The notes under the pieces are model-generated. The model was not told the origin of the DNA and searched no databases. It was given only the letters and a program-made list of their open reading frames with translations. A stretch of 64,000 bases of DNA from Macrostomum lignano (taxonomy: Eukaryota): assembly GCA_002269645.1 (NCBI GenBank), contig NIVC01000085.1, positions 744,001 to 808,000 on the forward strand, read 5' to 3'. Of this stretch, positions 3 to 32,544 are shown piece by piece (position 1 is the stretch's first letter; each line of letters starts with the position of its first letter). A program made the translations under genes and the position numbers.

Positions 3-406
3 TTTCATAGCGCGAATTTGATGGTGAAGAATGTTTGCAATGCGTATTTGAAGTCCGGTGGTCGAGTGCAGCATTACGAAGCCATTGAGTCGGACGACCT
101 TGTCAAGCTTGCTTCTTACTTCGACAGAAGCAATCCAACACGTTTGCAAGAAGAGGTATATTTCAATGTGTTATTTTATTTCGGCAATCGCGGCAGAGAA
201 TGGCTACGAGGTCTCACTGTTCGTTCATTCCGAGAGAAGGCCCTATCAAACGGAGCTATGGCGATCGAGTTGCAAGGCAGCACCTCAAAGAATGTAAAAG
301 GCTCGAGTGACATGCGACTCTGCGACGACAATAAACAGGCCTTGATGGTGGCCAAGCCGGAGACAAGGCACTGTCCAGTTCAGGCCTTCCAGCTTTATTT
401 GTCCAG
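3..406 (+). mobile_element. Crypton/DUF3504-like tyrosine recombinase fragment (N-terminal part of catalytic domain), 3'-truncated and fused in frame to an ankyrin exon
   Basis: The frame is open from the window edge. It contains HYEAIESDDLVKLASYF, LQEEVYFNVLFYFGNRGREWLR (R-G-x-E, first catalytic Arg), STSKN and HCPVQAFQLYLS, which match my recollection of the CryptonA/DUF3504 family. The HxxR and catalytic Tyr region is absent after 406. Confidence 0.7.
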
Positions 407-3355
407 CTGGAAATGCACGAAGCACCTGCTGCATCTGCTGAGGCAGCTCAGGTTTAACGAGTGCTCAACGTACGGAAACTCGAAGAGGTCGCGGCTACTC
501 GGACTGAAGGACCACCGCGGTCGGACAGCATCGGACCTGGCCAGACTCAACGACCATTCAGAACTGGCCAACTACATTGAGCTGTACGTGAGCATTTGTA
601 GTTAGAGTATTTGCTTTCTGCAAATTAAACATTCTCATCAGTCAAATTTTTTATTTCGTACAATACTTACTTCGGGGAACTCTGTGTGTACATCTACGGC
701 TCGTATTAGTTAAGTTGTTAAAAATATGTTCTTCTTCTAATTAACGTAATTGTATAGTAGGCCAATTTTTTATATTCGCTGTCACAGAGAAATGCGGCTG
801 GTTTTCCATTACAATGGCTCCATCACTGGTCTGGATTTTGTGGTGAGTGAGTCATCTGTGTGCCCATGTGTTTACGGTGTAAAATGGTGCCAAAAAATGT
901 ATTTGTCTTTCAGGAAAGCTGGCTAAAGGATATGAAAAAGCTGATTGAGGATGAAAACTACTCAGCGTTGGTTCAGAAAGTGAACCGCATCAACTGTGAT
1001 TTGCCTAACAGCCAGGGCAACACATTCTTGCTGATGTTTATGCATGTAGCTCAGCCTCAGCAGCGCAGCAATCCAGATACTACGAATCTGAATCAAGAAA
1101 CATTTTTGAAGAAGCTTCTGCAGGTGTGTGATCCCACGTGTGCAAATACATACGGGATGAGTGCCTTGCATATTGCAGCCTACAAGGGCAATTCTGCGGC
1201 AGCCATCGCACTGCTGAACGCTGGAGCCACGGCTAATGTCTACATGTGCTTGGAATGGACTCCCCTTATGCAAGCAGCTTTTTGTACCCAGCAAGATGCC
1301 GCAGCATCAGTTTGCTGGATTCTGCTTTGCGCAGGTTCTAATTGGAGTCTGAAGAACCGGGAAGGCAAGACTGCGCTAGATTTAGCAACTGAGCAAGGAA
1401 GCCACAAGATGGCTGAGCTTCTGCGTAGGTGAGTTTCATGTTGTACCAATTTATTTTGTAACTATCGATAAATTATTAGATATATAATTTGTTTTAATTA
1501 GCTATTTGAAATTTTACTGTTTTCTTGATTTTTTAGAAATCATGATAAGGACTGGTGGACTGAATTACCGGACCAGACACGAAGAGGTCAAGTCAGTACT
1601 ACAGACAGTTTATTTACCGAAAGGTTTGTCCCGTAATGTTTATTTCCAATACCCGATTTGCAGGAATTGTAAAAATATACTGACATATCCCTCGATAATT
1701 ATCTCGAATATTTTTATGTGAGCTTTACATTATTTCTGAGAAATAATTGGACGATTATTAATAGACCGAAAAAAAGTATATCAGAATTTATTCCATGTCA
1801 TTTTTTTGCAATTTCAAAACACCAAGTCAATAAGTGAAAATGAAAATTCCCGGTCATAATTCAACATTAGGTCGTCCATTAATGGTATTTCAGGTTAATT
1901 AGTCTCTTGTCCCTAAATTTCAGCTTTCGTGAAAACGATGCCTGGACTACCAGACCACAGTATCAGACTGGGAGTGGTGAATCTGGTGCCAGCTACAGCT
2001 ACGAATATAGAAGTCCGCCTGCCGCCTACATGCGCCAAGCTTCTCAGTGCACCCCACAGTCGCTTCAAGCAGTTGATCAACATTCTGCTGTCGAGAGTGA
2101 TTGCAGCTCAAATTCGAGGTTTGTGCCTGAATATCTACAATTTCGAAAGCTTTTACAAAAAACACCGGGTTTGATATTCAAAATTTTTTACCGAAGTTAT
2201 TAAAATACCAAAGAATGATGCGATCATGGGCGGCGAGAGCTTGCGGCACCGGGGGCACGTGCCCCCCCCCCCCAGAAAATGCGTCCACATGGTAATTTTT
2301 AGTGCTTTTTCTGATTTTAGGTCCTAATTAGCAGCTTATAAAGGTACCTGTGCCCCCCTTGCTCTGTGCCCAGTGCCCCCTCTCAAATATTAGGCTCCGC
2401 CGCCCCTGGATGCAATTTATATTTTAAAATATTTAACAAGCCTGCACAAATTGTCGCACTGCTTTTTACAGGTTTTCTAAACTATCTACCTAAGCCCTTA
2501 ATTTCAACTGTATTGCAGTCGCAGCGATGAATGTTATCCGGTGACAAATCCCCAAGGATTCTGCGTTATCATTAACATCAGCAAGTTCGAATCCAGCAGC
2601 GAGGGGGAGCGTAAAGGCTCCCAATTTGACGTGGAACGAGTCAGTGAGCTCTTCAGCAAACTGGGATTCATCATTGACGTACGCGAGGATCTGACTGCAG
2701 ATGAGATCGAAAACTACTTAGATTGTGTAAGAATTTGGAAAGAACTGGAACGCCATGGCGCTTTTGTCTGCTTCCTTATGACTCACGGTCGCGAGGACTG
2801 CATCGTCGGTAGCGATGGAAAGCCCTGCAAGATTTTCGATCTCACGAGAAAGTTTCAGGTGATTTATTTGCACTTGATCCAAACACTCAAAAGAACTCAT
2901 TGCAACGCTGTACCATTTGCAAAAACCTGTTTCAGCCGAAATTGTGCAGCAGTCTGGCTGGCAAGCCAAAAATTTTCTTCATCCAGGCCTGCCGTGGCCT
3001 CGAAAAAGACGAATTGTTGGTGAAAAGAGAAACAATCGACAATGCAGGTGGTCGATTCGAAGGAACTTCGGTTGTCTATCCTTCTAACAGTGACTTTCTG
3101 ATTTTTTACGCCACCCCCCGCGGTCAGGTTGCGTTTAGAGATGAAAACACCGGCTCATACTTCATTCAAACAGTGTGCGAACTAATTGAAAAGTACTACC
3201 AGACAGAAGACTTGATGAGCATCATGGTTCGAGTTAACAAGCGCATGGCGAAGAAACCTTACAGGGATGGCGACCAGTATTTTCATGTGGTGGGTGAAAT
3301 TACTGGGCACCCAACTCGCAAGATCTCCCTCGATCCAAGCAGAGCATGCGATTAA
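404..3355 (+). CDS. Ankyrin-repeat caspase, copy 1 (caspase intact, 5' ankyrin exon truncated)
   Basis: Exons 404-587, 914-1428, 1537-1623, 1924-2118, 2519-2858 and 2936-3355 all have GT-AG boundaries with compatible phases (0,2,2,2,0) and no internal stop. ANK motifs: GMSALHIAA, EWTPLMQAA, GKTALDLA. Caspase motifs: GFCVIINI, ERKGSQFD, FLMTHG, KPKIFFIQACRG, SDFLIFYAT, AFRDENTGSYFIQ. AATAAA at 3354-3359. Confidence 0.88.
2225..2408. mobile_element. hAT-like MITE in caspase gene intron
   Basis: Imperfect TIRs CATGGGCGGCGAGAGC / reverse complement CAGGGGCGGCGGAGCC. 8-bp TSD GATGCGAT (2217-2224) / GATGCAAT (2409-2416). Confidence 0.75.
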
Positions 3356-4486
3356 TAAAGACGAAACTGCTCACCATAAACACGTAAACTATAACAATTG
3401 AGTGATGTCTCTGAGTTTCAGCTGATTATTGTTCTTTTTCCAGCTTTAACCAAAGAGTTTCTAAGGCATGCTAGCGTCTAACATCGTGTTTTACGGTAAC
3501 TATGACTATACGTATAACTAACTATCCATATACCTCTACGAGAATCGTAGCTGAAAAGCGGTGCCTATTTACTCCTAAAAAATTAACCCTTTTATTTAGC
3601 TACTGCAGCCAGTGACAGACTTATATATTATTAGTGGGCTTTTTACTATAGACCTTTCCCGCTGCTGCTAGAGAGGATGCGAGGGCAAATGATGCGGGGG
3701 TTTGAGCTTTGATGAGTTTCATCAAACACGTACCGGTCTAACTGTAGAGCAATACGATCTAGAGAGAGTCTAGAGGCTTTTGACAAGAGTGACAAAATCA
3801 AGAAATCAAGGACGTATCTTCTTCGAATTTAGCACATATTACGGTTAGAAAATATCTATCTCTCAGTTTGCTATTTTTGAGGGCAAACAAAGCCACATAT
3901 ACATATATTATCGCGGGCCGCACGCATAGATGCTCATTGACTTGAAAGCCTACTACTTAAAGCTATTTGGATCTCCAGCTAGCCCTCCTTTTTATTTGTT
4001 TACCCCTATTTTTGCTCTCGAAACGTCCCATTTCTGCATGCCTTTCAAAGTACCTACAATTTCAATTACTAGGAGCCTCGAGTTCCTGTCGTTCGGCTTA
4101 TCTTTATGACGTACTGTACGGATTGCTCAAGTTTTTTTCTGCGATTGTTTATTCAAATTGAAAATTATTTGTTTTTCTATTCTCCTACTAATTACGTACG
4201 CACGTACAAATTATATAGATTTGCTTCCACTCCAATGTCACGTATAGCAACTAATTGTTTCTAAGAAAGGCTTGTTTTTAAGACAGGCTACACTCTAGTT
4301 GAACTACGTATCTGGTAATGGCTATATTTTGTAGCAAGAAAAATAATACTGTCTGCCGCAAACAGAGTAAAATTTATTATCTACAATTCTCTAGTGCGAG
4401 TGAACTTCTCTTTTTAGAATTAGCATAACAGAAGTAGCAAGCCGCGGCTTTAAATGTTCTTAAAGGAGAAAGAATTATTCATAGAT

Positions 4487-4787
4487 CGGGGGTCGGCAAA
4501 CTTCGGCCCGTGAAACCTCTCTAGCCTGCGAAACCCTCGGGCCCTTCGAAATTCACAATAGCAGTCCGGCCCGCTCAAGGTTTGTGTCTCTTAAAAAAAA
4601 ACGGTGACAGGGACTTAGTAGAAATGTTATTGTTTTTACGCTCGTACTATATCATTTTTACTATCAGTAGACTACTACGTATGTGTATCATATTTTGTAT
4701 GAATTCTGTGTATATTCATTGCATCGGCTTTTATATTTCGACAAGTGATGAGTTTTTAACAAATAGATAATTTTGCCCAGCCCATCG
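4487..4787. mobile_element. Probable hAT-like MITE (GGGGTCGGCAAACT terminus)
   Basis: Left end CGGGGGTCGGCAAACTTCGGCCCG and degenerate inverted right end TTTTGCCCAGCCCATCG. The same left-end motif recurs at about 41935, 49094 and 57478. No clean TSD was found. Confidence 0.4.
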
Positions 4788-6090
4788 TAACTCTCAGCCA
4801 ATCACAATTCGCTGTATCATCTATCGTTTTGATCTATTATTTATTTAAATGATCGTTTTTCGTCGCTACTCAAAAGAAATAAATAAAACTTGACCAACTC
4901 AGCAAGCTAAATATATCGTTTCTAGGACTCTAGGACTTGCGTATTCTGTTGTGTTCGGTTTTTTTTCTGCCAAGGTACTAAAGGAATCATAAGGTACTAA
5001 AACTTCAGTGCATCTGTATGTATACCAAAATAGCCTAAATAGTCTTGTGGCTTTTAGTTTAAGCGTTTAAACCGCCACAAGACCAGTCATACACTCACAG
5101 GAAGTCCAAGGGAATGAAATTTTTAAAGGTAAAAATTATGCGGAAACCGCATAGATCTTATAGGGAATATAAGTTCTATGGAAAACCGATTGCACTCAAG
5201 GTTTTGCATCATTTAATAAACGTAGTGTGACGCACATTATATTTTTTATACATCAAGTTGTGATTTATACTTGCTATACGAGCTATCTGTGTATATACAT
5301 AGCTTATATTCAATATCCAACCAATATTTATTTAATTGCCACATGTAATTTCGATCAAGTGACAGGCAGAGACTAGTATTTTAACAAATATTTATATCTT
5401 ACGTTTGATAAAAATCAGCTAGTTCTGACTCCATGCGAATAACGGTTTATAATCTGCAGTTGTTCTCATACAGATAAATTTTTCTTGCTGAATCGAGTCC
5501 GGTATGCATGTATGCACGAAGCTGCCCGAACCGACGCCGAGGTTTGCTGCTGTGCGAGGCCTCAGCTGACTGCCAGTCAAGGACTACTTATATGCTAGTG
5601 GTCCTTGGTATGCATGTACGTATTTACTCGGCGAAGGTGGTAGGAATACAGTACTATAGTAGTAGTATATTCTGGTTATCTATGATAATATTGTCGTGAC
5701 GTTATACGGATATGTTTCCAGTAAAGTATAAAGTTAGCATAAAATATTGTTTACTAATGTAGCTTCTTCTGGAAACTTCTGCGCCCTCCCCCTAGCTATA
5801 CTACGAGCGTAAAAAAAGCATTCTAGAAATTTCTCTCGCACGTCCCCAAGGCTATAAATAGAAACACCCCGTACTAAAACCGAGACCTCTCTCTTACTCG
5901 CTCTCTCTTCTTCGCGTTCTAATTGCTTACTGCTACAAATACACACACTTCTCGCTGCCGAGCATTCTGTCGGCCTGAATTATCAACCATAACCCGAGAT
6001 CTCTGTTCGTGCTTTCACAAAGATACAACAAATATGTTATAAGTTTTGACTAAGTTGCATTTTATTAATAATTTAAAAAACAAATAATTG

Positions 6091-6365
6091 ATTACATGTA
6101 CACCTGACCTAATGGGCAGATGCGCAACCGACAGCTCAACAGCAGCTATTGCGCGGCGCATCTGAAGGCTGCGTACGGCTGTTCAGTCCAAGGACTGAAG
6201 GCGGTTTGCCGCACCCCAGCTAATGCTGGCACCCATTTTACGCTGTTTGAACTGAAGCAATGCAGAGTGCGTCTTGCTCAAGGACACAAATTGTTCCAGT
6301 GGAATTGAGAATCGAACCCTCGACCTTCAAGTCGTGAGTCCGACGCTCTCACCACTAGGCTACAA
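6091..6365 (-). mobile_element. tRNA-derived SINE with CORE-like central domain
   Basis: The minus strand reads TAGCCTAGTGG (A box) ... GGTTCGATTC (B box), then GTGTCCTTGAGCAAGACGCAC...CATTGCTTCAGTTC...AAAATGGGTGCCAG, resembling conserved SINE central domains. Its 3' end recurs as a fragment at about 23250-23305. Confidence 0.65.
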
Positions 6366-7265
6366 ACCTCTACGTTGCATACAGACTGATTGATCTGTGT
6401 CCAAGGCTGCCGCACGCCAAACGAGCACTAAAACAAATTGGATGTTTAAATATAATGGGTTGAATTTCTTGGAAAAATAACCCAATTAAACAAACTCACA
6501 TAAACGATCTATAAAAAGCCAAGAATATTTGAGAATACATCTACTAGCCTCTTTCTTTTATTTTCTTTATTGTTGTTCGCAGACCGAGTACAAGCTTTCC
6601 AGCTTCTTTTATCTGCTTTCCTCCAAAGTACTCCGAATGGCCCAATTCAGCTCTTTCTCACTCCACCGTTCTCATTGCTATTATTTTCTATTTCTACTGT
6701 TGAATAGAGTGTGCACACGCTTTTTCCCCTGTGCATCCCCGACTGCTCACACAACTATCCTATTGTTTGTTCTCTCTTCTCTGTAAACACCGTTGCAGGT
6801 AAAAACACTTACAACTGCAAAAAGTAGAAATTAAACATATTTTAAACTAGGCACAATGGAAATTAAACACATTTACAACGGCGGCTGTCATTAATTGCTT
6901 CTGACTTCATTATCCCTGGGAATTAAGTCTTGCGTATCCATAAAACGGTGGCTGGCTATTTAATTTCTGCATTCATACTCGTACTTCTGCCATGCATTGA
7001 AGCTTTCCTTCTGCAATCGCCTTTGAATCGCATGTAAATATTTGCTTATTTGACCTCGCCCTAAATTAAGTCAGCTCAGCGACCCAAAAAACTGTATATA
7101 CATATTGAATACAAAATTTCACATTAAGAAACCGACACTAAAGCGTGAATAGGATCTGTGAGAACTTGCTCTGTCACAAGCACTTCCAATTTAATCACTG
7201 AATACCAAATTCCGAGCCTGAAACAGTATTCAACAGATAAATCTTCACCAACCTTTGAACTTCAA

Positions 7266-7655
7266 AACACCCGACAGGTAGCTACTCTCATAATTTTCGA
7301 ACTTCTGAACACCCGACAGGTAGCTAATCTCATCAACTTTCGAATTTCTGAACACCCGACAGGTAGCTACTCTCATCAACTTCCGAATTTCTGAACACCC
7401 GACAGGTAGCTAATCTCATCAACTTTCGAATTTCTGAACACCCGACAGGTAAATGTAGCTACTCTCATAACTTTCGAACTTCTGAACACCCGACAGGTAG
7501 CTAATCTCATCAACTTTCGAATTTCTGAACACCCGACAGGTAGCTACTCTCATCAACTTTCGAATTTCTGAACACCCGACAGGTAGCTACTCTCATAACT
7601 TTCGAACTTCTGAACACCCGACAGGTAGCTACTCTCATCAATCTTCAAACTTCAA
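7266..7655. repeat. 43-bp minisatellite, about 9 units (CACCCGACAGGTAGCTACTCTCATCAACTTTCGAATTTCTGAA)
   Basis: Tandem units read directly from the sequence, with GCTACTCTC/GCTAATCTC variants. Confidence 0.95.
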
Positions 7656-8554
7656 ACACAGAGCATTATATTGCTTTTATAACTAACTGAAAAGTTAACG
7701 AACCCTTATGAAAACAAACACAGGCAAAGTTTGTCTGACGTTGTCGTGTCGTAGCAATAAGAATGACTCTTCTATTTAAGAGAGCTCTTAGCTGAGCAAA
7801 GAATACGAAACTTCAACTGATAGCCAAACCGACCTTTATGGTTGCAACAGGCGGTAAGCAACATGCCGCCTACAATACCAGTACAGCGCGATCAAACTTT
7901 AAGCTTTAGCATATAGATAGAAAGATGCAACGTGCATCTTTCAACAACACTAAGTACCGGTACATTGGTAATGAGTACACTAGATATTAAGTACGCAGAT
8001 ACGCAAGGCGAGTCAGAGAAATTAAGTAGGAAGGACAATAATTTTTGTAATCCTCGAAAAAAACCTCAGTACGATGAGGTAAGTAGCAAGTTCTTATATT
8101 GACGGGATTTATTTGCGGGACCACTGAAATAATCTAAGGATCAAGTAAAGAAAGTTTTTTATAGCTTGTTATCGAGATTCAAGTTGCCAACGACCATGGC
8201 GGACGATTCAGCTACAGAGAGAGTTAAAGATAGGAAAGTCAGGGCTATTACGACATGAGATTCCGGTATACGAGCGTACGCCTTATTCACGCCAAAGTGT
8301 GTCTAAGTAAACGTGTGCTGTAACTGTGTGCTCAGTTTCACACGCTTTACAAAAATAATTTGGAGTGATAAACCGCCAGAAATAACTCAAACTCTGAAGG
8401 AGCAGTTAAAATAGTTGAATTGATGAACTCTGAATTAGTTGCTATTAGTTAAAATAGCAACTAATAGAAACCACTGACCACTACTTCCAGAGATTGTGAA
8501 GTTTTAATAACACTAGTAAAGTTTCGATCTAGTAAAAGTCCAACTTAAAGAATT

Positions 8555-8880
8555 TTCGACCTAATGAATTTTTGATCAATGAATTTTCGTCATAATGAAA
8601 TTTCCACCTGATGACTTTTCGACCTACGAATATAGTCTCCACAATAATGCGGGTTCGACATAATGAAGTTTCGAAATAATGAAGTTCCGACATAATGAAG
8701 TTTCGGTGTAATGAAGTTTCGGCATAATGAAGTTTCGACATAATATAGTTTCGACATAATGAAGTTTCGACATAATATAGTTTCGACATAATGAAGCTTC
8801 GACACATTGAAGTTTAAACCAAGTGAAAATGTGACCTAATGAAATTTAAACCTAATGAAGTTCCGACAAAATGAAATTCA
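8555..8880. repeat. Degenerate 16-bp tandem repeat (CATAATGAAGTTTCGA)
   Basis: The core of near-perfect units is at about 8655-8815, with degenerate flanks. It may be the subterminal repeat array of a TIR element. Confidence 0.85.
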
Positions 8881-9257
8881 GACAATTTAATTCAGACGAT
8901 AATTTAAACTACCAAGTCAAACATTTACTTATAAAACAACAACTTTGACACACGGTGCTGCAACTGATGCAGCTGTGGAATAGGAGCCTGAAAATTTGCC
9001 TCGCGACTTTCAGCTGACAAAGATTTACCGTATCGACTTTAAAATACTTTCCAACAAATGCTTCTGTGGAAGGATCTGAAGAACAATGATAAACACGAAG
9101 AATAATCAAGGTTAGTTATGCCAGGGAAAGTTTTTTATGTTTTAATTTATATTTGCTCAGGACTGTGTGGATTGCGTTTGAAACCAGAGCATTACAGTTT
9201 GTTTGAGTCCATGCTCAGCTAACCAACTGAGACAGTCGGCCACCGCACCGCTCGAGC

Positions 9258-9912
9258 TCAGCCACGCACGAACAGAGTCCACTCGGGCCCGCTCAGGTAG
9301 CCAGGCGGGTACACGAACTCCAGCAGGTGGCAGGCGAGCTCCTGTCGGGAGAAAACGGCGGCCCGGCAGTCGGCTCTGGCGCTGCACTTGGCCGTGCACT
9401 GAATTGCCGACTTAGCAACAACCGGCCAAACAGAAGAGATATTAAATGTCACGGGAGGGCTTGACTGCTTCACTCTCCAGTAGGTGTTCAGCGAGTCCTG
9501 GGTACCCGGGTAGCTCAGGTAGAACACAGAGTTGCGGAATGAAGCTCCACACTTCTGCAGTTTGTTGCCGGGGCAAGCCATACCACAGTTGCCATCGCTC
9601 ACCAAGCCATGGGATCCGTACGAGTTGCCGCAGTAGCACTCCCTGCCGTACTGCACCCCGAAATAGAGGAAGCTGCCTATTGAGCAGATGCCGCTGCACA
9701 GCTCGTGTGACATCTCTGCTTCTGACTTTCCCGTAACCATCGACTGTAAACCCGCCGATCTTGCTAACATCACTGAGCCCGTTCAGGTCTCTCGGGGACA
9801 AATCATTTTTGTAGCAGCCCAGGTATGCAAAGCGGACAAACCTACAGGTGACGCAAGTGAGCAGGAGGGCAGCGCAGAACAGAACGGTCAGAGCCGCTGC
9901 CGGGCGGAACAT
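9258..9912 (-). pseudogene. Secreted WSC + PAN/apple-like gene, copy A (1-bp frameshift near 9716; intron collapsed)
   Basis: Signal peptide MFRPAAALTVLFCAALLLTC, WSC motifs YLGCYK..RDL and ECYCGNSY..C..C.GN..QKCG, and PAN-like CTAKCSARADCRAAVFS...CHLL. The reading frame shifts between the ORFs at 9442-9924 and 9258-9773, which may be an assembly error. Confidence 0.8.
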
Positions 9913-10004
9913 TTCGCTGCTCAAGAAAGAGGCTTGGAGCAGCTTTGGTCCTTGAAACTGTAGCGTTGGCAGTTTTGCTTCTTCATCTCTTCAGCGGAAG
10001 CAGA

Positions 10005-10040
10005 TTTATAAGACTTTGATGGCATCGCTCTTTTACCAAT
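10005..10040 (-). promoter_or_regulatory. TATA box plus reverse CCAAT box upstream of WSC copy A
   Basis: TATAAA on the minus strand at 10005-10010 and CCAAT at 10036-10040. An equivalent arrangement is at 33546-33590 (copy C), a TATA at 20151-20156 (copy B) and a CCAAT at 54882-54886 (copy J). Confidence 0.55.
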
Positions 10041-11331
10041 CAGCAATGTTTCTGAAAACCCGATTCAGCGAGATGCTTTGAATGCCTGCTCAGGTATTTA
10101 AGTACCCCTGAGGCTTGTCAATCATTCCCTCTGGATCTGTGTTTGGCTCCATTCCCTCTGGAATAAGCTGCTGTCATGCAACAAAATCTGATCTAGCTTG
10201 ATAGATACGCCCCGGGCATGTGCTTGCTAGGACTGACTGCCGTTTTTTATCACCATAAAAGACTGACAAGCATGGATATATCTACAATAGGCTTTCCATT
10301 ATGCAAGGCAAAAGCAGCATTTTTGTGAATTTTTAGAGCGTCAAACTTCTCCCTTTTTATCCTTGAGGAGTGGCATTACAGGATTATTAACAGGCCGCAA
10401 CTTTGTCGCTATTGGCAATTGCTGCCGTGCATGCAGTAGAATTTTAGCATCCCATGATAGCCAGCTCGATAAATTTGTGATACACTTACTTTATTCTGAA
10501 TTCAGAAATCCAGAAGCAAACATATTTTTAGTACAGTGCTACAAAACTGGAAGGAAACTTCGTGTCTTTTGAGGGTCGTATATTTGACTAAAATTGTACA
10601 TGGCTTACCTTCTTACATGCGGAATTCTGTGGCACAATCCATGCATATCATGGCCCCGTTAACTTTGGCGAGAGTAAAGCTTGATTCTGAGCAGAAGGCA
10701 AAGGTATAATTGAAGTTTGGTACACTACAAGGCGTCCTACCTACGACCTAATACTTGTACTTTGCTTTTTGGACTCGTGATTGTCTCATCACCTTAACTT
10801 TGCGCCCGTGACGGTGAGTTTTGCTTAGCTGTACAGATGACCGGCTACAGATGTCTGTACTCTGGCATATCACCGACAGGTTTAAGGCTCGCTTCATCTT
10901 GAAGCCACGGTGACGACAGAGGCGAGACTGACCGAATCCCGGTGCTTGTCCCAGAGACTCTTGAATCGCAGTTGTCATAGTCAATTGACTCGATTCGTGC
11001 TTGGACTTTATTATTCAAATTTTAAGAAGCTTCATTCTTTCCGTTTTATTTTGATGATGAGCCTATTTGTAATTACCTTCCAGTGCATCTTCGGGATTTT
11101 CTGGTCTTACTAGCAATAAACCTCCACATTTTCCCATGTCCGAAATGCAAGAATGATGTTGCGTATTGGAAATGAAGTCTATTTCTATGTTCTAGGGTAC
11201 TTTGCAAAGCAGACAGTAAGATAAAACGGGACGAAACTTTTTAGATACCAAGTTTATATACAGTTAAGAGTACGATCAGTTTTTTGCAATGAACATCTTT
11301 AAAACGGAGCAAAATAATAATTTAAATGTAT

Positions 11332-11871
11332 TTACTGCAAATTAAATGCAAAATAATGATTTAAATGTAAGAAGCACTTAATTGAAGAGCAGCAAAGCAG
11401 AAAATACTGTTGTTTTTTTAAACGGGGATTTTGAAAAGATTGGCTTTTTTGCACAGAGCTGAATGGGGCTTCGACATGGAGAAATTTGCTCGATAAAAAT
11501 CTGCCTAGAAAATGTACTATAGAGACAGAAACAGCTGAAATTTTGTTGTAACTTTGTTTAATTACCGATCTGTGATGGCCTTTCGTGAACAATAGCTTGA
11601 TAAAATTGCGAATGCACCTCGAATGAAGAACATACTTTCGTAAGGGAAGGGACCTGAGAAAAGACTCAAACGTTGAGCAGACCGGATTGCTTAATGTTTT
11701 CAAAGTACCCGAGGCCAGATAGAGAGGCTTCATTGGCCGCATGTGGCCATAGTTTGCCGACCTATCAACTAATACGCTGGTGGAACGTCTCAAGCGGCAT
11801 GTCGGGACCCCTTGTTTCTCAGATGAATTTAATCCCGTACAGAAAAAAACAGAAGTCACTGCAAGAGACAA
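11332..11871 (-). other. Degenerate ORF, possibly transposon-derived (Penelope post-RT region or tyrosine-recombinase box II-like)
   Basis: The 179-aa open frame contains CSTFESFL...LLFTKGHHRSVIK and KYVLHSRCIR. These weakly resemble two different TE families and cannot be assigned without an HMM search. Confidence 0.25.
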
Positions 11872-11919
11872 AACGTATATTTTTTAGCGATTGTGTTTTT
11901 TAAACAGATCAATGTAACT

Positions 11920-12545
11920 TTGACTTACTTGACTTAGCTGCAGGGCTGTCCCAGGGGGACACAGCGGGAAGGCGCGAGCGCCCATTCCGCTAATCCCTGA
12001 ACGGCCGACGCGTCGCTACGGATGAAGGGTTGGCGCCGCCCAGGGAGGTCCCCCAGTGTCGCCAGTAGCTATGGTGCTCTCTGGAAAGGAGAGTTCAGCC
12101 CTGCGGGTGGCCCGGAGGTAGCGCATGAGCTGATTAAAGTTTTCGGGTTTGCACGCTTCAGTATAAGATGTCTGTGGCCCGAGGTAAGTGAGTCTGGCTC
12201 GCGTAAAAGCGGGACACATGCTGACGAAATGCCCAGCGGTTTCGTCACCTGAGTTACAGAAACTGGTTGCAGGTACTGGTGCCTAGAGAAGCAGCCGTGA
12301 CCTGAGAGGGTCATAGTGGCAGCCCGGATGTCTCTGCGCGAGAGGCGCAAGAGGAGCTTTCGGAGCTGGTGAGAGGGCTGAGGGACAGCGCCTCTGGATT
12401 GCCTGCAGGTAGTGAGTGCAGTTCGCCCAAGTCGAGCGATGCTGGGTCCTGATCCACGCTTTGATGCGCGAGTCGATGACACAGCCAGGAATCGGGAAAA
12501 GGGGTTCGGGACCGAGAGATGAGCCGGAGGCGCCAACTTCTCTTT
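11920..12545 (-). mobile_element. 3' end of a non-LTR retrotransposon (LOA/R1/I-group-like), 5'-truncated
   Basis: The minus strand encodes RDIRAATMTLSGHGCFSRHQY and then, in another frame, FCNSGDETAGHFVSMCPAFTRARLTYLG, the C-terminal CCHC knuckle of LINE ORF2. A GC-rich 3' UTR follows, with an AAGTC/AAGT tandem tail at about 11920-11937. Confidence 0.65.
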
Positions 12546-12548
12546 TAT

Positions 12549-12601
12549 CTATATATAACCTCTGTATATATATATATATATATATTTCTCTATATCTATA
12601 T
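12549..12601. repeat. (TA)n microsatellite
   Basis: TA dinucleotide run at the 5' truncation point of the LINE fragment. Confidence 0.85.
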
Positions 12602-15600
12602 GTAACCTCTTTTATCATGACTTGCCTGTTTGATTGCTGCTTTCATTTTTGCAATTTCAATTTTTTAAGCTGAAAATCAGCAAATGCACGATGGGATCTG
12701 ACCTGTTTTGCTTAATGATCCTATAACAGTCCACTAATATTTGCTGGCGATCAACATTACTGGCCGGCCCTAGCTTCGATGCACATATCAACGGCACTAC
12801 TTCGATTTCTAGAAGTTACTGCACAGCTTCATCCGCATCGCATCTCAGTACTCCAGTTGGAACCGATGGTCGAGGCTTAGGTCGACTCTGGCCATATAAC
12901 TGAATGGGTTCCCATCCACGGTGCACTAAGTAACAGTGGTTGCTGGCATTCAGCAGGAATGCGGCCTTGCCATTGGACAGTATTAACAAGATGTGCCTAA
13001 ATTTCACGTGACATCTTACGTCCTCAGGTACAGCTGGAGTCAACCAGGATCCCTAGTATACCAATCAGCCAAGTAATCGATTTTCCCTTCTTTCCAGCAT
13101 ATGCTTGCCCCTAGTTTGAGTTCAAAGTCCCAGGAGTTCTTTCAGGCCTAATTCTGCTCTATACTATCGATCTCATCTCAATTTTGCTCTTTTATCATGC
13201 TCCAATAGAAGTTAGATTCTACATAAAATATTGGCTCGTGGCTTCTACATACATACCACGTGGCTTCGTAAACTCCAATCATTTAGGCGTTCTATATGAG
13301 CACAAGATAGCTCAACGTATGAAAATTATTGTGATTCCATCCCAGCACGCTGCAATGCTTAAAATTAATTTTATACTTTTGTCTGACTAATTTATTCAGA
13401 TTTAGTCCTTCTACCAAGGCGCTGTCGAACAAGCGACGGAGCTTTAAGTGATGTCAGCAGTTTGCCTACGTCGGCAGGGGCTACCATTCGCTCCATGAAG
13501 GTGTTTCTTTGGTAGGCACAAATGGGTACTAATAGTAGCTCAGTCAACATATATTGACTGCAGACTCTTTCCGTACTTTCTGTTACTGTCAGCTATTTTT
13601 AGCCACTTGAATCACACCGAAGACCTACCTAAGCTATTGTTTGTCTCTATAAAATCTGGAAAGTCTTGTAAAAAATGGGGCTCAGGCTGTCACAGTTGCA
13701 TTCTGTCCTACCAATTCACTGCTACCTGCTGTGTACGTCTGCTTTCAGTGAGCTTTGTGGCTACTAAATGGGCAGTTGGTTCTCCAAACCAGCTCCGATC
13801 CCAACCTTCCAACCAACCTTCCCCGACAGGGAGGTAAGTTACTACGAGTAATAATCTTTCAAAGATCGAATAAAGTTCGAATCTCATTGTCAGACCTTTA
13901 TTTGCGACCCTTTTTATTGTAATACTTATGACACGTGACATGATTTTGTGATAATGCGAAATAGCAATGCTAAAATTTCAGCTAGGGGACTCACGGGCAA
14001 ATTCTTTTGTGAGCGTGGTGAGATACAATACTTCCAGCTCTTCAGCCGGTTAAGGAAATCTACATATGCTGTAGAGACATATGCTGTAGAGACACTCCCA
14101 GCTGGTCATTGAAGCTGACTTCAGCCAGTTACTGCTCGAGGCAACTAAAGAGCTCATGACCAAGACCGATGCAGCCGAACGGACCGTCCTTATGCTGGTG
14201 GCCGACGCTTATGAGACTCCAGTGCAGGCTGAAAAGTGCATCTGGCTCTTATATAAGCTGGGCGCAGATCCCAAAGCAACTGACCGGTCGGGCGACACGG
14301 CCGCACACTTGGCAGCCCGGCGAGACAACCTGCGAGTGCTTGCGCTGATTCCATTTGAAGCGAAGTGGCTGCAAAATGAGAATGGCGCCACTCCGCTGAT
14401 GGAAGCCGCACGGGCTGGCAGCTGGAAATGCACGAAGCACCTGCTGCATCTGCTGAGGCAGCTCAGGTTTAACGAGTGCTCAACGTACGGAAACTCGAAG
14501 AGGTCGCGGCTACTCGGACTGAAGGACCACCGCGGTCGGACAGCATCGGACCTGGCCAGACTCAACGACCATTCAGAACTGGCCAGCTACATTGAGCTGT
14601 ACGTAAGCATTTGTAGTTAGAGTATTTGCTTTCTGCAAATTAAACATTCTCATCAGTCAATTTTTTATTTCGTACAATATTTATTTCGGGGAACTCTGTG
14701 TGTACATCTACGGCTCGTATTAGTTAAGTTGTTAAAAATATGTTCTTCTTCTAATTAACGTAATTGTATAGTAGGCCAATTTTTTATATTCTCTGTCACA
14801 GAGAAATGCGGCTGGTTTTCGATTACAATGGCTCCATCACTGGTCTGGATTTTGTGGTGAGTGAGTCAGCTGTGTGCCCATGTGTTTACGGTGTAAAATG
14901 GTGCCAAAATGTATTTGTCTTTCCAGGAAAGCTGGCTAAAGGATATAAAAAAGCTGATTGAGGATGAAAACTACTCAGCGTTGGTTCAGAAGGTGAACCG
15001 CTTCAACTGTGACTTGCCTAACAGCCAGGGCAACACATTCTTGCTGATGTTTATGCATGTAGCTCAGCCTCAGCAGCGCAGCAATCCAGATACTACGAAT
15101 CTGAATCAAGAAACGTTTCTGAAGAAGCTTCTGCAGGTGTGTGATCCCACGTGTGCAAATACATACGGGATGAATGCCTTGCATATTGCAGCCTACAAGG
15201 GCAATTCTGCGGCAGCCGCCGCACTGCTGACTGCTGGAGCCAGGGCTAATGTCTGCATGTACCTTGAAGTGACTCCCCTTATGCAAGCAGCTTTTTGCAC
15301 CCAGGAAGATGCCGCAGCATTAGTTTGCTGGATTCTGCTTTGCGCAGGTTCCAATTGGAGTCTGAAGAACCGGAAAGGCAAGACTGCGCTAGATTTAGCA
15401 ACTGAGCAAGGAAGCCACAAAATGGCTGAGCTTCTGCGTAGGTGAGTTTCATGTTGTACCAATTTATTTTTTAACTATCGATAAATTATCAGATATATAA
15501 TTTCTTTTAATTAGCTATTTGAAATTTTTACTGTTTTCTTGAATTTTTTAGATTTCATGATATGGACTGGTGGACTGAATTACCGTACCAGACAAGAAGA

Positions 15601-16143
15601 GGTCAAGTCGGTACTACAGACAGTTTATCTACCGAGAGGTACGTCCCGTAATGTTTATTTTCTATACCTTTTGCAGAAAAAGTAAAAATGTACTGCAATA
15701 TCCCTCGATAATGACAATCTAAAATATTTTATGTGACTTTTAAATTACTTCTGAAGAATAGCGATTAGACGATTAACAGACCGAAAAAAGTATATCAGAA
15801 TTTATTCCATGTCATTTTTTGCAATTTCAAAACACCAAGTCAATAAGTGAAAATGAAAATTCCCGGTACTCACTCTCAGTATCAGACAAGGAGTGGTGAA
15901 TCTGGTGCCAGCTACAGCTACGAATATAGAAGACCGCCTGCCGCCTACATGAGCCAAGCTTCTCAGTGCACCCCACAGTCGCTTCAAGCAGTTGATCAAC
16001 ATTCTGCTGTCGAGAGTGATTGCAGCTCAAATTCGAGGTTTGTGCCTGAATATCTACAATTTCGAAAGCTTTTACAAAAAACACCGGGTTTGATATTCAA
16101 ATTTTTTTACCGAAGTTATTAAAATACCAAAGAATGATGCGAT

Positions 16144-16330
16144 CATGGGCGGCGAGAGCTTGCGGCACCGGGGGCACGTGCACCCCCCCCCCCCCCAGAA
16201 AATGAGTCCACATGGTAATTTTTAGTGCTTTTTCTGACTTTAGGTCTTAATTAGCAGCTTATAAAGGTACCTGTGCCCCCCTTGCTTTGTGCCCAGTGCC
16301 CCCCTCAAATATTAAGCTCCGCCGCCCCTG
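16144..16330. mobile_element. hAT-like MITE (paralog of 2225-2408)
   Basis: Same TIRs, with a perfect 8-bp TSD GATGCGAT at 16136-16143 and 16331-16338. Confidence 0.8.
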
Positions 16331-16681
16331 GATGCGATTTATATTTTAAAATATTTAACAAGCCTGCACAAATTGTCGCACTGCTTTTTACAGATTTGCT
16401 AAACTATCTACCTGAGCCCTTAATTTCGTAAAGGCTCCTAATTTGACGTGGAACGAGTCAGTGAGCTCTTCGGCAAACTGGGATTCATAATTGACGTACG
16501 CGAGGACCTGACTGCAGATGAGATCGAAAACTTCTTAGATTGTGTAAGAAATTGGAAAGAACTGGAACGCCATGGCACTCTTGTCAGCTTCCTCATGACT
16601 CACGGTCGCGAAGACTGCATCGTCGGTAGCGATGGAAAGCCCTGCAATATTATCTATCCCACTAGAAAGTTTCAGGTTATT

Positions 16682-17808
16682 TGTAGAGTGCTATACCTCC
16701 CAAGAAAAGTCATACAAATTGTTAACGTACTACTTATTAGTTTTATTCAGTAGTATAGCAAGAAACAAGTATAAAAATAAGTACTGAATCACATGCGTAA
16801 CTTTAGTCAACCAATCAGAAGAGAGGAAAGTCGAACATGTTATTCTTGGCAACCCACCAATCATGCGTGACCTACAATTGTCAAGTTAAACCCCATCTGC
16901 CATTCATCATTGGTCACGTGTGACCTACTTTTGTCAAAACAAACCCTGCCTGCGATTCATCATCTGGCTTGCACCCGGTCTGCACCGGATGAACCAATCA
17001 AATGCGACAGAAAAACACCAGATACGGTAACCAATCATTCGCGTTTACAGTAGACTAGTTGCGCAACTTTCTACCCTGTTATGCTTGACAGCCACCGAAT
17101 CGTGACCCTTTGAAATTTACAAAAAAAGTGATGGACGACCTCGAGAGAGGTTCGTTTGCCTATAAATACAAGTGTTCCGGAACGGACCCGGAGCCAACAC
17201 TTCTCTGAGAGAGAAAGCTCCGAAGAGGAAGCTGCAGCAGACTTTTGAAGCAACTCGAGACTCGGTCGAGTTCTTACGGTAAGCCTTACTCATTTGCGCC
17301 TGTTGGTTGAGACGTCTCGCTCAAGTCTAGTCTACGCTCGTAGTTAAGTCTGTTGAGACTCTTGAGTCTGTTTAGACTCCACTGGTTGCAGTCTCCAGAA
17401 GGACTGCCCCTGATAGATCTTAGAAGACTATCAGTGGTCTCCGGAGCTATTCCTAGAGTGCAAAGAGGCACTGCTAGAAGGAGTAGGCTTATATTATACC
17501 GCAGTTTGGCGCAGGGATCCCCATTGTAATTGGAAGCTTCCCATTGGTCCGAACTACAGACGCCGGCCGGCACAAGACGATGAAGAAACTCGGACCAGGA
17601 CTACAGAGTCAAGTCGGACAAAAGGCCTGATTGACAGATCTGTGACGAGATCTACAAGGACTCAAAGAAGAGATCTACACCTCCGGATTAAAGGTAATTA
17701 AATACCTTCAGTTGACTTACTGCGTTGCCTAGCTACAGAGCTAGAAGTGATTGTTCCTTGATTACAGTTAAGGACTGGTAATAAGGAACAAATCAGATTT
17801 TTTTAAAA
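16682..17808 (+). mobile_element. Insertion in caspase copy 2 intron with LTR-like promoter features
   Basis: Absent from the 77-bp homologous intron of copy 1. It carries several CCAAT boxes (about 16811-17036), TATAAATA at 17161 and a GTAAGC donor at 17279. TGTAG...CTACA occurs at 16682/17737, but no TSD was found. Confidence 0.4.
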
Positions 17809-18691
17809 ATTGATTTAAACACTGAAAAGAACTCATTGCAACGCTGTACCATTTGCAAAAACCTGTTTCAGCCGAAATTATGCAGCAGTCTGGCTGGCAA
17901 GCCAAAAATTTTTTTTCATCCAGGCCTGCCGTGGCCTCGAAAAAGACGAATTGTTGATGACAAGAGAAACAATCGACACTGCAGGTGGTCGATTCGAGGG
18001 AACTTCGGTTGTCTATCCTTCTAACAGTGACTTTCTGATTTTTTACGCCACCCCCCGCGGTCAGGTTGCGTTTAGAGATGAACAAAACGGATCATGCTTC
18101 ATTCAAACAGTGTGTCAACTAATTGACAAGTACTACAAGACAGAAGACTTGATGAGCATCATGGTTCGAGTTAACAAGCGCATGGTGAAGAAGCCTTACA
18201 GGGATGGCCACCAATATTTTCATGTGGTGGGTGAAATTACTGGGCACCCAACTCGCAAGATCTCCCTCGATCCAAGCAGAGCATGCGATTAATAAAGACG
18301 AACCTGTTCACCATAAATTCATAAACTGGAAATTGAGTGATGTCTCTGAGTTTCAGCTGAGTTTCGTCTAACAATGTGTTTTATAACCTTTCATTTAACT
18401 CTACGCGCATCGCAGTTAAAAATGTGTGCCTGTTTATTCCTTCAAATTTTAACCCAGGGGCTACTCAAGTAGAAGAGCAGGAAACCTCGTTTCTTGGGAA
18501 ATTTGAGAAGACAGTTTTTCAGAAAAATACACTACGGAGATAGGAAGTATTCTCTCTCTGTGCCGCCCCAGTCTGCACTTTTCGCAATTCACATTTTTGC
18601 TTGTTCAATAGCAAACTAATGAACTGCAGCATTGACTGTTACCATAATTTTTTCTATTTTCACAAGCATTGAAGTTTGGCTGGACACATTT

Positions 18692-18935
18692 GTAATTAAA
18701 CACATTTACAACTGGTCTCAGTTGCAATAAAACACATTTACAACTGGTCTCAGTTGCAATAAAACACATTTACAACTGGTCTCAGTTGCAATAAAACACA
18801 TTTACAACTGGTCACAGTTGCAATTAAACACATTTACAACTGGTTACAGTTGCAATTAAACACATTTACAACTGGGTCACAGTTGCAATTAAACACATTT
18901 ACAACTGGTCTCAGTTGCAATTAAACACATTTACT
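18692..18935. repeat. 32-bp minisatellite, about 7-8 units (AACTGGTCTCAGTTGCAATTAAACACATTTAC)
   Basis: Tandem units read directly from the sequence. Confidence 0.95.
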
Positions 18936-19324: not shown

Positions 19325-20061
19325 TCAGCCACGCACGAACAGAGTCCACTCGGGCCCGCTCGGGTGGCCAGGCGGGTACACGAACTCCAGCAGGTGGCAG
19401 GCGAGCTCCTGTCGAGAGAAAACGGCGACCCGGCAGTCGGCTCTGGCGCTGCACCAGAGCAGGCAGTCCTCGACGGACTGGGCAGCGACAGGCCAGACGG
19501 AAGGGGCACCGGATGTCACGGGAGGGCTGGACGGCTTCACTACCGTGTAGGTGTTGCAGTTTGAAACTGAAATTGAAGAAATGTGCATCAGTTCATTAGT
19601 AAGAATACGGCCACAATGACTGCCGCTACTGAACAGTAAAAGTGAAAGTAACCTGGGTAACTCAGAGAGAACACGGAATTGCGATAGTATCCGCCACACT
19701 TCTGGAGTTGGTTTCCGGAACAAGTCTTGCTGCAGTGGTCTTTGCCCACCAATCCATGGGATCCGTACGAGTTGCCGCAGTAGCACTCTGTGCTGAACTG
19801 CACGCCGAAGTAGAGAAAGCTGCCTACTGAGCAGATGCCGCTGCACAGCTCGTGCGACATCTCACTGTTGCTTACTCTGCCGCCAGCTCCAACTCTGAAC
19901 CCGCCGATCTTTCTGACTTCACTGAGTCCGTTCAAGTCTCTTGGTGACCCATGGTCTTTATAGCAGCCCAGGTATTCGAAATGGACGAGTCGGCAGGGGA
20001 CGCAAGTCAGCAGGAGGGCAGTGCAGAACACAGCGGACAGAGCCGCTGCTGGGCGGAACAT
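19325..20061 (-). CDS. Secreted WSC + PAN/apple-like protein, copy B (intact)
   Basis: Exons 20061-19653 and 19566-19325 give 651 nt (217 codons), with an 86-bp GT-AG intron. Signal peptide, WSC and PAN-like cysteine patterns are present. An alternative ATG is at 20073, and AATAAA lies on the minus strand at about 19209-19214. Confidence 0.88.
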
Positions 20062-21031
20062 TTCGCTGCTCATAGAGAAGTTCGGGGCAGCTGAGGTTGG
20101 TGGAACCGCAGCTTTGACTGTTTTCCTTTCATCTGTTCAGAGCAAACACATTTATACATGTAGGTGCCTGAGCTCGCATTGCTCGTCGACCAACTGGCGA
20201 TATTTTTCTAAAAATTGGATTCGATGATCAGCTTAGGATGCCTGCTCAGGTACTCAAGTACCCTTGAAAGCATGTCAAGCTTTAACCTGAAGAATTTTTG
20301 GTCCACATTCATTTTGGAAGAGTGTCAAATTTCGTCCATTTTATCGTCATTTTTCCAAAAAACCATATTTGTTTTAGCTACTGAAATATACAATAATAGC
20401 TAAAAGAAATTTCTCAATAAAAATTACTACCTGCTTTCCGTACTTATGCACTATTTAAAACCGATAGGCACTCAAAAATTTGAAAAAAAATTGTATCTTT
20501 GGCTTTAAAAAACTGTGCTTCATAATTTCTTTAAAACAAGTAGTAGCTGGCTTTGCAGCATTGAGTCTAAATACTTCATCGGTAATACACAACATTTCAA
20601 GTTCAACTGTATTAATTTTGTAGAATCAAAATACAAATTCTGTAATACTAATAATAAAAGAAGGCAAAAAATGCGGCCATCATGGTTCTGACACTTTGAA
20701 AAAAGTGACAATAATCGAAATAAATAGATTTTTTATGAAAATCAAAGAGAAAGATCTGCTTTTAAATACTTTTCTTCAACTTCCCTCAAACTTTCATACT
20801 TTCCCTTTCACGCAAACCATATTTAACCCACTTCTAGCATTGGTGATACAAAATGAAGAACCAAACAAGTCAGCACATACTACTACTTCTGCTATTTGTA
20901 CAAAAATAGCTAAGTCGAATATGCTCTACATCATAAACCCATTGCACATTGGCGAACAAGTGACAGACGTAAAAGGGAATCTTAGTAAGCATCTGTGGGG
21001 TCTAGAATAGACAGGCTACAAGACTGGCTAA

Positions 21032-23699: not shown

Positions 23700-24090
23700 T
23701 TAGGTAGCTACTCTCATCAGCCTTCAAAATTCTGAGCTCCTGACAGGTAGCTACTCTCATCAGCCTTCAAACTTCTCAACTCCTGACAGGTAGCTACTCT
23801 CATCAGCCTTCAAACTTCTGAGCTCCTGACAGGTAGCTACTCTCATCAGCCTTCAAACTTCTCAACTCCTGACAGGTAGCTACTCTCATCAGCCTTCAAA
23901 CTTCTCAACTCCTGACAGGTAGCTACTCTCATCAGCCTTCAAACTTCTCAACTCCTGACAGGTAGCTACTCTCATCAGCCTTCAAACTTCTGAGCTCCTG
24001 ACAAGTAGCTATTCTCATCAGCCTTCAAACTTCTGAGCTCCTGACAGGTAGCTATTCTCATCGGACTTCAAACTTCTCAACTCCTGACAG
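23700..24090. repeat. 43-bp minisatellite, about 9 units (CTCCTGACAGGTAGCTACTCTCATCAGCCTTCAAACTTCTSAR)
   Basis: Tandem units of a diverged relative of the 7266-7655 unit, in homologous flanks. Confidence 0.95.
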
Positions 24091-24744: not shown

Positions 24745-24750
24745 TATAAA
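24745..24750 (+). promoter_or_regulatory. TATA box of CTLD-TM gene G1
   Basis: TATAAA about 70-80 bp upstream of the ATG, conserved at 26961 (G2), 42521 (G4) and 58199 (G6). Confidence 0.55.
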
Positions 24751-24818
24751 GTCTGCTTTGTTTGTCATGAGAGCAGACTAGAAACACGTCTCGTTCGATT
24801 CTCACTGCTTAGTAGACG

Positions 24819-32024: not shown

Positions 32025-32544
<520 letters not shown>

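Follow-up and report, generated by a model that had tools for sequence, protein, structure and literature searches.

A tandem pair of damaged ankyrin-caspase genes in the flatworm Macrostomum lignano, and the family to which they belong

We analyzed a 64,000-nucleotide stretch of contig NIVC01000085.1 (hereafter, the window), which carries genes that join ankyrin (ANK) repeats to a caspase-type protease. Its source is the free-living flatworm Macrostomum lignano, the predicted protein being 85–98% identical to M. lignano entries. The original prediction had read positions 404–18292 as a single ANK-caspase gene with two ANK modules closed by GxTAxDLA caps, a Ser/Tyr-rich linker and a caspase bearing the motifs THG, QACRG, RKGS and AFR. 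All of these motifs exist, far beyond what chance would give, and they were confirmed by Pfam and by alignment with caspase-3; the single gene, however, resolved into two partial tandem copies. Comparison of the window with itself revealed that 404–3425 aligns with 14419–18360 at 94–96% nucleotide identity, and 404–18292 thus comprises two tandem paralogues, not one gene. We are highly confident that the window harbors two tandem ANK-caspase paralogues of M. lignano, neither of them intact, which go back to an architecture of seven coding exons.

Exon models were derived from inspection of splice sites, tblastn of relatives and comparison with L001 (NIVC01002066.1:143632-166808), a paralogous locus holding a single copy. 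The ancestral gene has seven coding exons (1, A, A2, B, C, D and E; Table 1), all AG/GT-bounded and compatible in phase, and is nearly intact at L001 and in the protein models P0002 and P0003. Its product runs from an MGxxxS N-terminus through a bipartite ANK cassette of ~330 aa and a disordered Ser/Tyr-rich tether of ~70 residues to a complete caspase. That ANK and caspase exons share one gene, as had been supposed, is borne out by splice phases that are compatible both in copy 1 and at L001 and by the recurrence of the arrangement in at least five subfamilies. Exon B ends in phase 2, and exons C and D both begin in phase 1; the introns are short (77–500 nt), and neither a stop nor a start codon lies between the ANK and caspase parts. 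At L001, the gene forms a 694-codon open reading frame (ORF) that is interrupted once, by a TAA early in exon E (second-to-third codon). This codon (L001 13169-13177) stands just before QACRG, where the two window copies read TTG and TTA (Leu), and it causes the NCBI model P0004 to stop at ...KFQPK. Given that P0003, the equivalent model in another assembly, reads Leu at this position, the L001 stop could be an assembly error. As they stand, three of the three genomic copies examined from the window-gene subfamily carry a disabling change.

Table 1. Exons and other annotated features of the ANK-caspase copies, the ancestral gene and the neighboring WSC-domain genes. Positions are those of the window.
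Feature	Position	Strand	Basis or remark
Copy 1: Crypton-like DUF3504 / tyrosine-recombinase ORF, truncated, in-frame fusion with copy 1	3..403	+	99% identical to L001 6726-7128
Copy 1: exon A remnant, distal half of ANK module 1 (SWKCTKHLL...GRTASDLA...YIEL)	404..583	+	GTACGT donor at 584
Copy 1: micro-exon A2 (EMRLVFHYNGSITGLDFV), beta-hairpin connector between the ANK modules	788..842	+	AG/GT-bounded
Copy 1: exon B, ANK module 2, ending GKTALDLATEQGSHKMAELLR	914..1428	+	Pfam Ank families, splice sites
Copy 1: exon C, Ser/Tyr-rich linker, 65 codons, phase-symmetric, skippable	1924..2118	+	absent from P0003
Copy 1: exon D, opening part of the caspase large subunit, with beta1, the S1 arginine in ERKGS and the catalytic His in THG	2519..2858	+	Peptidase_C14, caspase-3 alignment
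Copy 1: exon E, QACRG catalytic Cys, ETID-N candidate processing site, small subunit with AFRD, TAA stop	2936..3355	+	caspase-3 alignment
Copy 2: exon 1, start codon and MGSWFSKPAPIPTFQPTFPDRE, N-myristoylation-type MGxxxS start	13768..13833	+	ATG, GTAAGT donor; matches P0004 N-terminus
Copy 2: exon A, complete ANK module 1	14102..14598	+	AG/GT-bounded, in frame with exon 1; Pfam Ank_2 E=2e-23
Copy 2: micro-exon A2	14802..14856	+	splice sites
Copy 2: exon B, ANK module 2	14927..15441	+	intronic read-through gives ...AELLRR, then stop
Copy 2: exon C remnant, acceptor and first 34 nt missing	15877..16037	+	nearest AG in wrong phase
Copy 2: exon D remnant, acceptor and first 91 nt (beta1 strand) deleted	16427..16675	+	CAA->TAA at 16439 directly after RKGS
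Copy 2: exon E, 1-nt insertion at 17909, +1 frameshift before QACRG	17872..18292	+	comparison with copy 1
Ancestral gene: exon 1			MGSWFSKPAPIPTFQPTF.DRE
Ancestral gene: exon A			ANK module 1, GRTASDLA at end
Ancestral gene: exon A2			55-nt micro-exon, EMRLV...DFV
Ancestral gene: exon B			ANK module 2, ends GKTALDLA...AELLR
Ancestral gene: exon C			Ser/Tyr-rich, 65 codons; missing from model P0003
Ancestral gene: exon D			beta1, ERKGS, THG
Ancestral gene: exon E			QACRG, ETID, AFRD, stop
WSC-domain gene, paralogue	9258-9924	-	hydrophobic signal-peptide-like N-terminus
WSC-domain gene, paralogue	19325-20073	-	hydrophobic signal-peptide-like N-terminus
WSC-domain gene, paralogue	33031-33528	-	hydrophobic signal-peptide-like N-terminus
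WSC-domain gene, paralogue	54378-54824	-	hydrophobic signal-peptide-like N-terminus

The full set of features is intact in neither window copy. A complete ANK module 1 is present only in copy 2 (14102-14598), and the only intact caspase of the window is that of copy 1 (2519-3355). The two genes are therefore defective in complementary ways and offer an example of gene birth and death; with both of them damaged, the locus is not the place to study function. In copy 1, position 404 marks a sharp boundary from which the sequence resembles copy 2 and L001. Positions 1-403 of the window correspond to L001 6726-7128 (99%), and positions 404-4592 correspond to L001 10646-14840, identifying copy 1 as an L001-type gene minus ~3.5 kb. 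Lost with these ~3.5 kb are the promoter, exon 1 and 317 nt from the start of exon A. The Crypton-like ORF that now precedes the exon A remnant is not part of the ancestral gene. Whereas Pfam gave no match for the 192-aa ORF at the left window edge, the full version at L001 (6503-7441) matched DUF3504 (E=4.6e-10) and, weakly, Phage_integrase. The junction cuts the DUF3504 domain mid-way and the frame happens to be kept, so that P0001, the annotated 759-aa M. lignano model encoded by the window itself, is a chimera. Exons A2 to E of copy 1 are intact, and its caspase domain is complete.

Copy 2 is damaged at its other end. An ORF of 377 aa is intact across exons 1, A, A2 and B, and in the part that follows the catalytic His-Cys dyad does not lie in one frame (stop at 16439, loss of beta1, frameshift). 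We considered whether an alternative in-frame acceptor could rescue the caspase and rejected this possibility: downstream of the stop there is a single in-phase AG, its polypyrimidine tract is poor, and a product made from it would still be without beta1 and the S1 Arg region and would still meet the frameshift. Copy 2 cannot encode an active caspase, giving at best an ANK-only protein, and is probably on the way to becoming a gene of the ANK-only kind that other paralogues in the genome represent. Assembly error is an unlikely source of its two deletions and its TAA. Of note, the D-E intron of copy 2 contains an extra ~1.1 kb (16682-17810), probably an insertion, whereas in copy 1 and L001 the intron has no such sequence and measures 77 nt.

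The caspase domain of copy 1 scored well above the family threshold, with a match to Peptidase_C14 (PF00656) at E=2.4e-44 and 152 bits against a curated cut-off of 21.4. Upon alignment with caspase-3, ERKGS fell on R64, THG on H121, QACRG on C163 and AFRD on R207, and ETID-N aligned with the IETD-S processing site. At the sequence level, copy 1 thereby combines what characterizes a C14A peptidase, namely a domain above threshold, the His-Cys dyad and both S1 arginines. The two S1 arginines are invariant across four paralogues, and from them the copy 1-type protease is predicted to be specific for Asp. The linker Asp is present in the Cys-bearing paralogues and absent from P0005, in which the catalytic Cys is lost as well (QAGRG). 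Among solved structures, caspase-3/7 are the closest (PDB E ~3e-34). We then compared nonsynonymous with synonymous substitution rates, using Nei-Gojobori estimates that rest on small counts: the dN/dS ratio was 0.14 for the caspase domain of copy 1 vs L001, 0.48-0.55 for the caspase remnants of copy 2 vs copy 1 or L001, and 0.32-0.54 for the ANK cassette in all pairs. The value for the copy 2 remnants agrees with a loss of protease function in this copy. No signal of positive selection was seen in the comparisons of copy 1, copy 2 and L001, all dN/dS values being below 1.

The original prediction had left room for a death-fold exon lying further 5'. No such prodomain was found: the full-length relatives P0004, P0005, P0006, P0012 and P0011 contain no CARD, DED or Death domain at E<=1, only Ank and Peptidase_C14, and a death-fold match was likewise missing from the ten longest open segments on the plus strand in the interval from the upstream WSC gene to the copy 2 ATG. 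Moreover, a Met-Gly start recurs in three divergent subfamilies, as MGSWFSK (copy 2 at 13768, L001, P0004), MGSAASS (P0012) and MGSGSSV (P0006 and P0188, where it precedes the cassette). Its conservation argues that it is the true N-terminus and that there is no coding exon further 5'. All three sequences conform at the motif level to the N-myristoylation consensus (Met1-Gly2, a small or uncharged residue at 3, Ser/Thr/Ala/Gly/Cys/Asn at 6, no Pro at 7). An ANK prodomain and a caspase in one polypeptide that lacks CARD and DED are thus seen at the level of the family (L001, P0002 and others) and, in part, in each window copy.

At least five M. lignano clusters, with 33-47% identity to the window protein, combine ANK repeats with Peptidase_C14: the P0004 group, the P0005/P0012 group, P0006, P0267 and P0331. 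Both domains were confirmed in P0002, P0005, P0006, P0267 and P0331, and the ANK array of another group (P0011, P0031) is a different and longer one. A caspase phylogeny, which the original prediction had suggested, was built as a neighbor-joining tree from 221 columns with 100 bootstraps. The M. lignano ANK-caspases formed one monophyletic clade (92% bootstrap) outside the caspase-3/7 and caspase-8/10 groups, while deeper nodes were left unresolved. In a full-length single-sequence search, caspase-8 was top among the non-Macrostomum matches (34% identity). The short caspases P0007, P0008, P0071, P0072 and P0074 were considered as a separate class with short prodomains, a grouping we rejected upon finding that they nest inside the ANK-caspase subclades; as P0007 and P0074 begin inside the cassette, the short models are most likely truncated predictions. 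Other models are fused, among them P0188 (2968 aa) and P0001 (joined to the transposon ORF). Queries with the full-length protein, a caspase profile, an exhaustive cassette profile and P0267 returned no neodermatan ANK caspases among their matches; all that the same four queries yielded were ANK-caspases of M. lignano together with ordinary caspases or generic arrays of ANK repeats. Separately, a bacterial protein of 780 aa from a Thermodesulfobacteriota metagenome-assembled genome (P0368) has ankyrin repeats together with Peptidase_C14, indicating that this combination can arise independently.

To Pfam, the ANK modules are Ank_2 repeats (E=1e-12 to 2e-23). They end in GRTASDLA and GKTALDLA, and the Ser/Tyr-rich segment (SGESGASYSYEYRSPPAAY) comes next. 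An AlphaFold model of the cassette, with a predicted local distance difference test (pLDDT) score of 87.5 and a predicted template modelling (pTM) score of 0.86, shows ~4 and ~5 helix-pair repeats separated by a beta-hairpin. The hairpin is the modelled form of micro-exon A2, which was found in P0001-P0006 and is conserved in divergent paralogues. The nearest solved structures are DARPin-DARPin fusions, tankyrase ARC2-3 and ankyrin, with TM-scores of ~0.35-0.40. In a full-length model of P0002, both cassette and caspase kept their folds and overall pTM was 0.55, while the Ser/Tyr-rich tether (residues 361-431, equivalent to exon C; pLDDT ~25-30) and, together with it, the linker between the subunits (~25-39 for the two) are predicted to be disordered. 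Together, the overall pTM and the disordered tether suggest that cassette and protease would be arranged as beads on a string, with no confident packing between them.

The cassette is not confined to caspases. It is 50-58% identical, with many invariant positions, between caspase-linked, kinase-linked and cassette-only proteins. P0014 has the cassette at residues 84-384 followed by a kinase domain at 414-681, and P0018, P0213 and P0253 show the same arrangement; P0225 (one model) carries it C-terminal to an SH3 domain; and it stands alone in P0189, P0210, P0013 and P0016. The linked kinase is closest, among solved kinases, to the STE-group members ASK1/MAP3K5, MAP3K2 and PAK1 (E ~1e-27), on which ground an identity as RIPK or IRAK was considered and rejected. 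The cassette profile was also run in an exhaustive HMMER search against 1.84 billion representative proteins, counting as matches those that covered the whole profile in a single stretch. All such matches came from M. lignano, and the others among the top 150 were long generic ANK arrays, which the profile matched in many places and which were not informative. Since the cassette is found on kinases, with SH3 and by itself, it looks more like an interaction or recruitment module that several proteins have in common than like a dedicated sensor, and such sharing suggests a modular signalling system.

Caspases of this type have been named before. Horkan et al. (2024, Genome Biol Evol, PMC11463336) surveyed 60 lophotrochozoan genomes and described 'ANK caspases' as a maximally supported clade, the sister group of DED caspases, and proposed to be initiators, which had first been noticed in Schistosoma (Lee et al., 2014, Trends Parasitol). 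The architecture had therefore largely been characterized already, a possibility that the original prediction had allowed for, by in silico description only; no further mention of ANK caspases was found in the literature searched. In that survey, ANK caspases are stated to be restricted to parasitic platyhelminths and lacking in free-living flatworms, and one annelid ANK caspase is regarded as convergent. One M. lignano caspase is placed sister to the ANK clade, M. lignano being listed only with a 'kinase pro-domain' caspase, and the authors report a loss of FADD in flatworms and caution that unusual prodomains may reflect joins made by gene prediction (PMC11463336). The M. lignano 'kinase pro-domain caspase' may be a merged model of neighboring cassette-kinase and cassette-caspase genes. 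An example of an oversized merged model is P0188, with its 2968 aa.

The M. lignano family resembles the platyhelminth ANK caspases in that an N-terminal ankyrin prodomain replaces CARD or DED in a flatworm protease proposed as an initiator. It differs in distribution: the reported clade is parasitic only, whereas M. lignano is free-living and has at least five subfamilies. The published restriction to parasites does not hold for this free-living source, and the family corrects the distribution. New here are a diversified ANK-caspase family in a free-living flatworm, the occurrence of its cassette on kinases, with SH3 (one model) and alone, an N-terminal motif of the myristoylation type, a Cys-less member and several damaged copies. 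These data argue against an origin of ANK caspases that was tied to parasitism, provided that the family is orthologous to the parasite clade. ANK caspases are recently named, biochemically unstudied and regarded as a replacement for the FADD/DED-caspase pathway that parasitic flatworms have lost, and M. lignano, being free-living and genetically tractable, provides an experimental system for them.

Likeness to other caspases is partial. As in caspase-8/-10, a long prodomain and a tether precede the protease and the intersubunit linker has an xETxD-like site; those enzymes, however, use DED where the M. lignano family has no death-fold, and the clades are apart in the neighbor-joining tree. 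With caspase-3/-7 the family has in common the catalytic and S1 residues, a GSWFIQ-like loop and the position of the linker Asp, but the prodomain of caspase-3/-7 measures ~25 aa as compared to >400 aa, and the M. lignano clade lies outside their group. In its modular logic the family recalls death-fold systems, in which one interaction module is placed before a caspase, before a kinase or alone: CARD is found on caspase-9 or caspase-2 and on the kinase RIPK2, and CARD-only and cFLIP-type decoys exist. P0005 (QAGRG), like cFLIP, is a paralogue without the catalytic Cys. In contrast to the six-helix fold and the RIPK/IRAK kinases of death-fold systems, the M. lignano cassette is an ANK solenoid and its kinase is STE-like (ASK1, MAP3K2, PAK), and any homotypic assembly of the cassette is hypothetical. 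Tankyrase ARC clusters and two-module DARPin fusions likewise have two ANK modules of ~4-5 repeats in series (Foldseek E 1e-13 to 1e-9), but at TM-scores of ~0.35-0.40 this resemblance is generic to ANK folds and indicates neither specific homology nor a shared function.

Taken as a whole, an explanation that joins the damaged copies to a recruitment-driven family accounts best for the data, and we lean toward it by a modest degree. As to how the family may work, we infer that recruitment-driven activation of a membrane-anchored zymogen is the most likely mechanism, a proposal that we put forward tentatively. The zymogen would be anchored to the membrane by N-myristoylation, and the ANK cassette would serve as a protein-protein recruitment module, as CARD and DED do in classical initiators. 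Because the cassette is common to STE-type kinases, the SH3 model and cassette-only proteins, it probably serves to gather distinct effectors at one partner or platform that they share. Clustering would then lead to dimerization and to autocleavage at the linker Asp (ETID-N in the window subfamily), giving an Asp-specific protease, while cassette-only proteins and the Cys-less P0005 may act as decoys or regulators. Initiator status is plausible in view of the long prodomain, the disordered tether of ~70 residues and the Asp site in the linker.

Several points weigh against this account. The copies are known here from genomic sequence, any expression or activity being hypothetical; N-myristoylation is likewise predicted, from a short motif; and the binding partner of the cassette is hypothetical. 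The dN/dS estimates come from small counts, and the 1-nt insertion at 17909 falls in a homopolymer run and could be an assembly or sequencing error. In addition, the protease appears as close in sequence to effector caspase-3/7 (PDB E ~3e-34) as to caspase-8, and the neighbor-joining tree leaves the deep position of the M. lignano clade unresolved. In an alternative that we consider unlikely, the enzyme would be an effector-type or specialized caspase, a constitutive dimer activated by an upstream caspase (e.g. the M. lignano CARD caspase), with the cassette localizing it, selecting its substrates or autoinhibiting it. Caspase-3/7 being the best solved-structure matches, the high rank of caspase-3 sequences in the profile search and the alignment of ETID-N with IETD-S, a site cleaved by an upstream caspase, would all be expected of such an enzyme. 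A prodomain of >400 aa followed by a disordered tether would not, and neither would a full-length model (pTM 0.55) in which cassette and protease show no confident packing. Furthermore, caspase-8 came first among the non-Macrostomum matches of the full-length single-sequence search, and the published phylogeny has ANK caspases as sister to the DED initiators (PMC11463336).

Recruitment also has to be weighed against direct sensing, the role that the original prediction had favored, in which the ANK repeats would directly recognize a ligand derived from pathogens or damage and activate the caspase to which they are joined by an NLR-free route. The family is lineage-specific and expanded, includes tandem copies and pseudogenes and has a cassette under only moderate constraint (dN/dS 0.32-0.54), a combination often seen in immune families, and ANK scaffolds do bind peptides and proteins. 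Ligand binding by this cassette is, however, purely hypothetical, no signal of positive selection was found (all dN/dS <1), and a cassette that is ~50-58% identical whether linked to a caspase, to a kinase or to neither is more in keeping with one common cellular partner than with the recognition of diverse ligands. The sensor role thus drew no support from our analysis, the distribution of the cassette pointing to a recruitment module, and we regard it as quite improbable. A more trivial explanation would be that ANK and caspase are separate neighboring genes joined by gene prediction, and several M. lignano models are indeed fused or truncated (P0188, P0001 and the short caspases starting inside the cassette). 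Against such an artefact speak the compatible exon phases, the lack of a stop or start between the parts, the introns of 77-500 nt and the fact that the same order and junction (..AELLR-linker-FYPVTNPQG..) occurs in at least five subfamilies of 33-47% identity, at different loci and in two assemblies; we give this explanation very little credence.

The Macrostomum ANK cassette may have taken over the job of the death-fold, as a lineage-specific, membrane-associated assembly module for caspases, STE-type kinases and possibly SH3 proteins that is accompanied by cassette-only or Cys-less decoys and forms a death-fold-independent signalosome. We raise this idea as speculative and rather doubtful. 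If it were true, ANK caspases would predate flatworm parasitism, overturning the 'parasite-specific' view, and could be studied in a transgenic free-living model.

The ANK-caspase copies are embedded in other repeated sequence. Four paralogous WSC-domain genes lie on the minus strand of the window (Table 1; Pfam WSC E=4.6e-15 for 19588-20070), one of them between copy 1 and copy 2, and three WSC genes stand upstream of the single ANK-caspase gene at L001. As WSC genes accompany the ANK-caspase at both loci, the two appear to duplicate together. A 43-bp minisatellite (~9 copies) lies downstream of each ANK-caspase copy, at 7245-7641 and 23702-24090, and is also found downstream of the L001 gene (16832-17352), making it part of the duplicated unit. 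A 32-bp satellite (TGGTCTCAGTTGCAATTAAACACATTTACAAC) occupies 21035-22770, 18690-18934 and 30857-31136; 54 copies with 94% identity make up the largest array, and the smaller ones are situated directly after copy 2 and near 31 kb.

The remainder of the window contains a second repeated block in four copies of 66-90% identity (24574-29500, 41778-45060, 48947-51300 and 57388-60266). It holds a small Cys-rich ORF with a transmembrane-like stretch (50232-50660), for which Pfam gave no match, and a paralogous region is located at ~58.9-59.3 kb. A transposon remnant with a retroelement integrase core (rve, E=2.9e-11) maps to 38124-38594 on the minus strand, and the minus-strand ORF at 56899-57465 has a weak GIY-YIG match (E=3.6e-4), possibly reflecting a Penelope-like transposon remnant. 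Finally, long spurious ORFs on both strands are found over an (ACAG)x130 microsatellite at 32025-32544 and over a perfect 13-bp x 30 repeat (GAATCCGCCCCCG) at 48499-48884.

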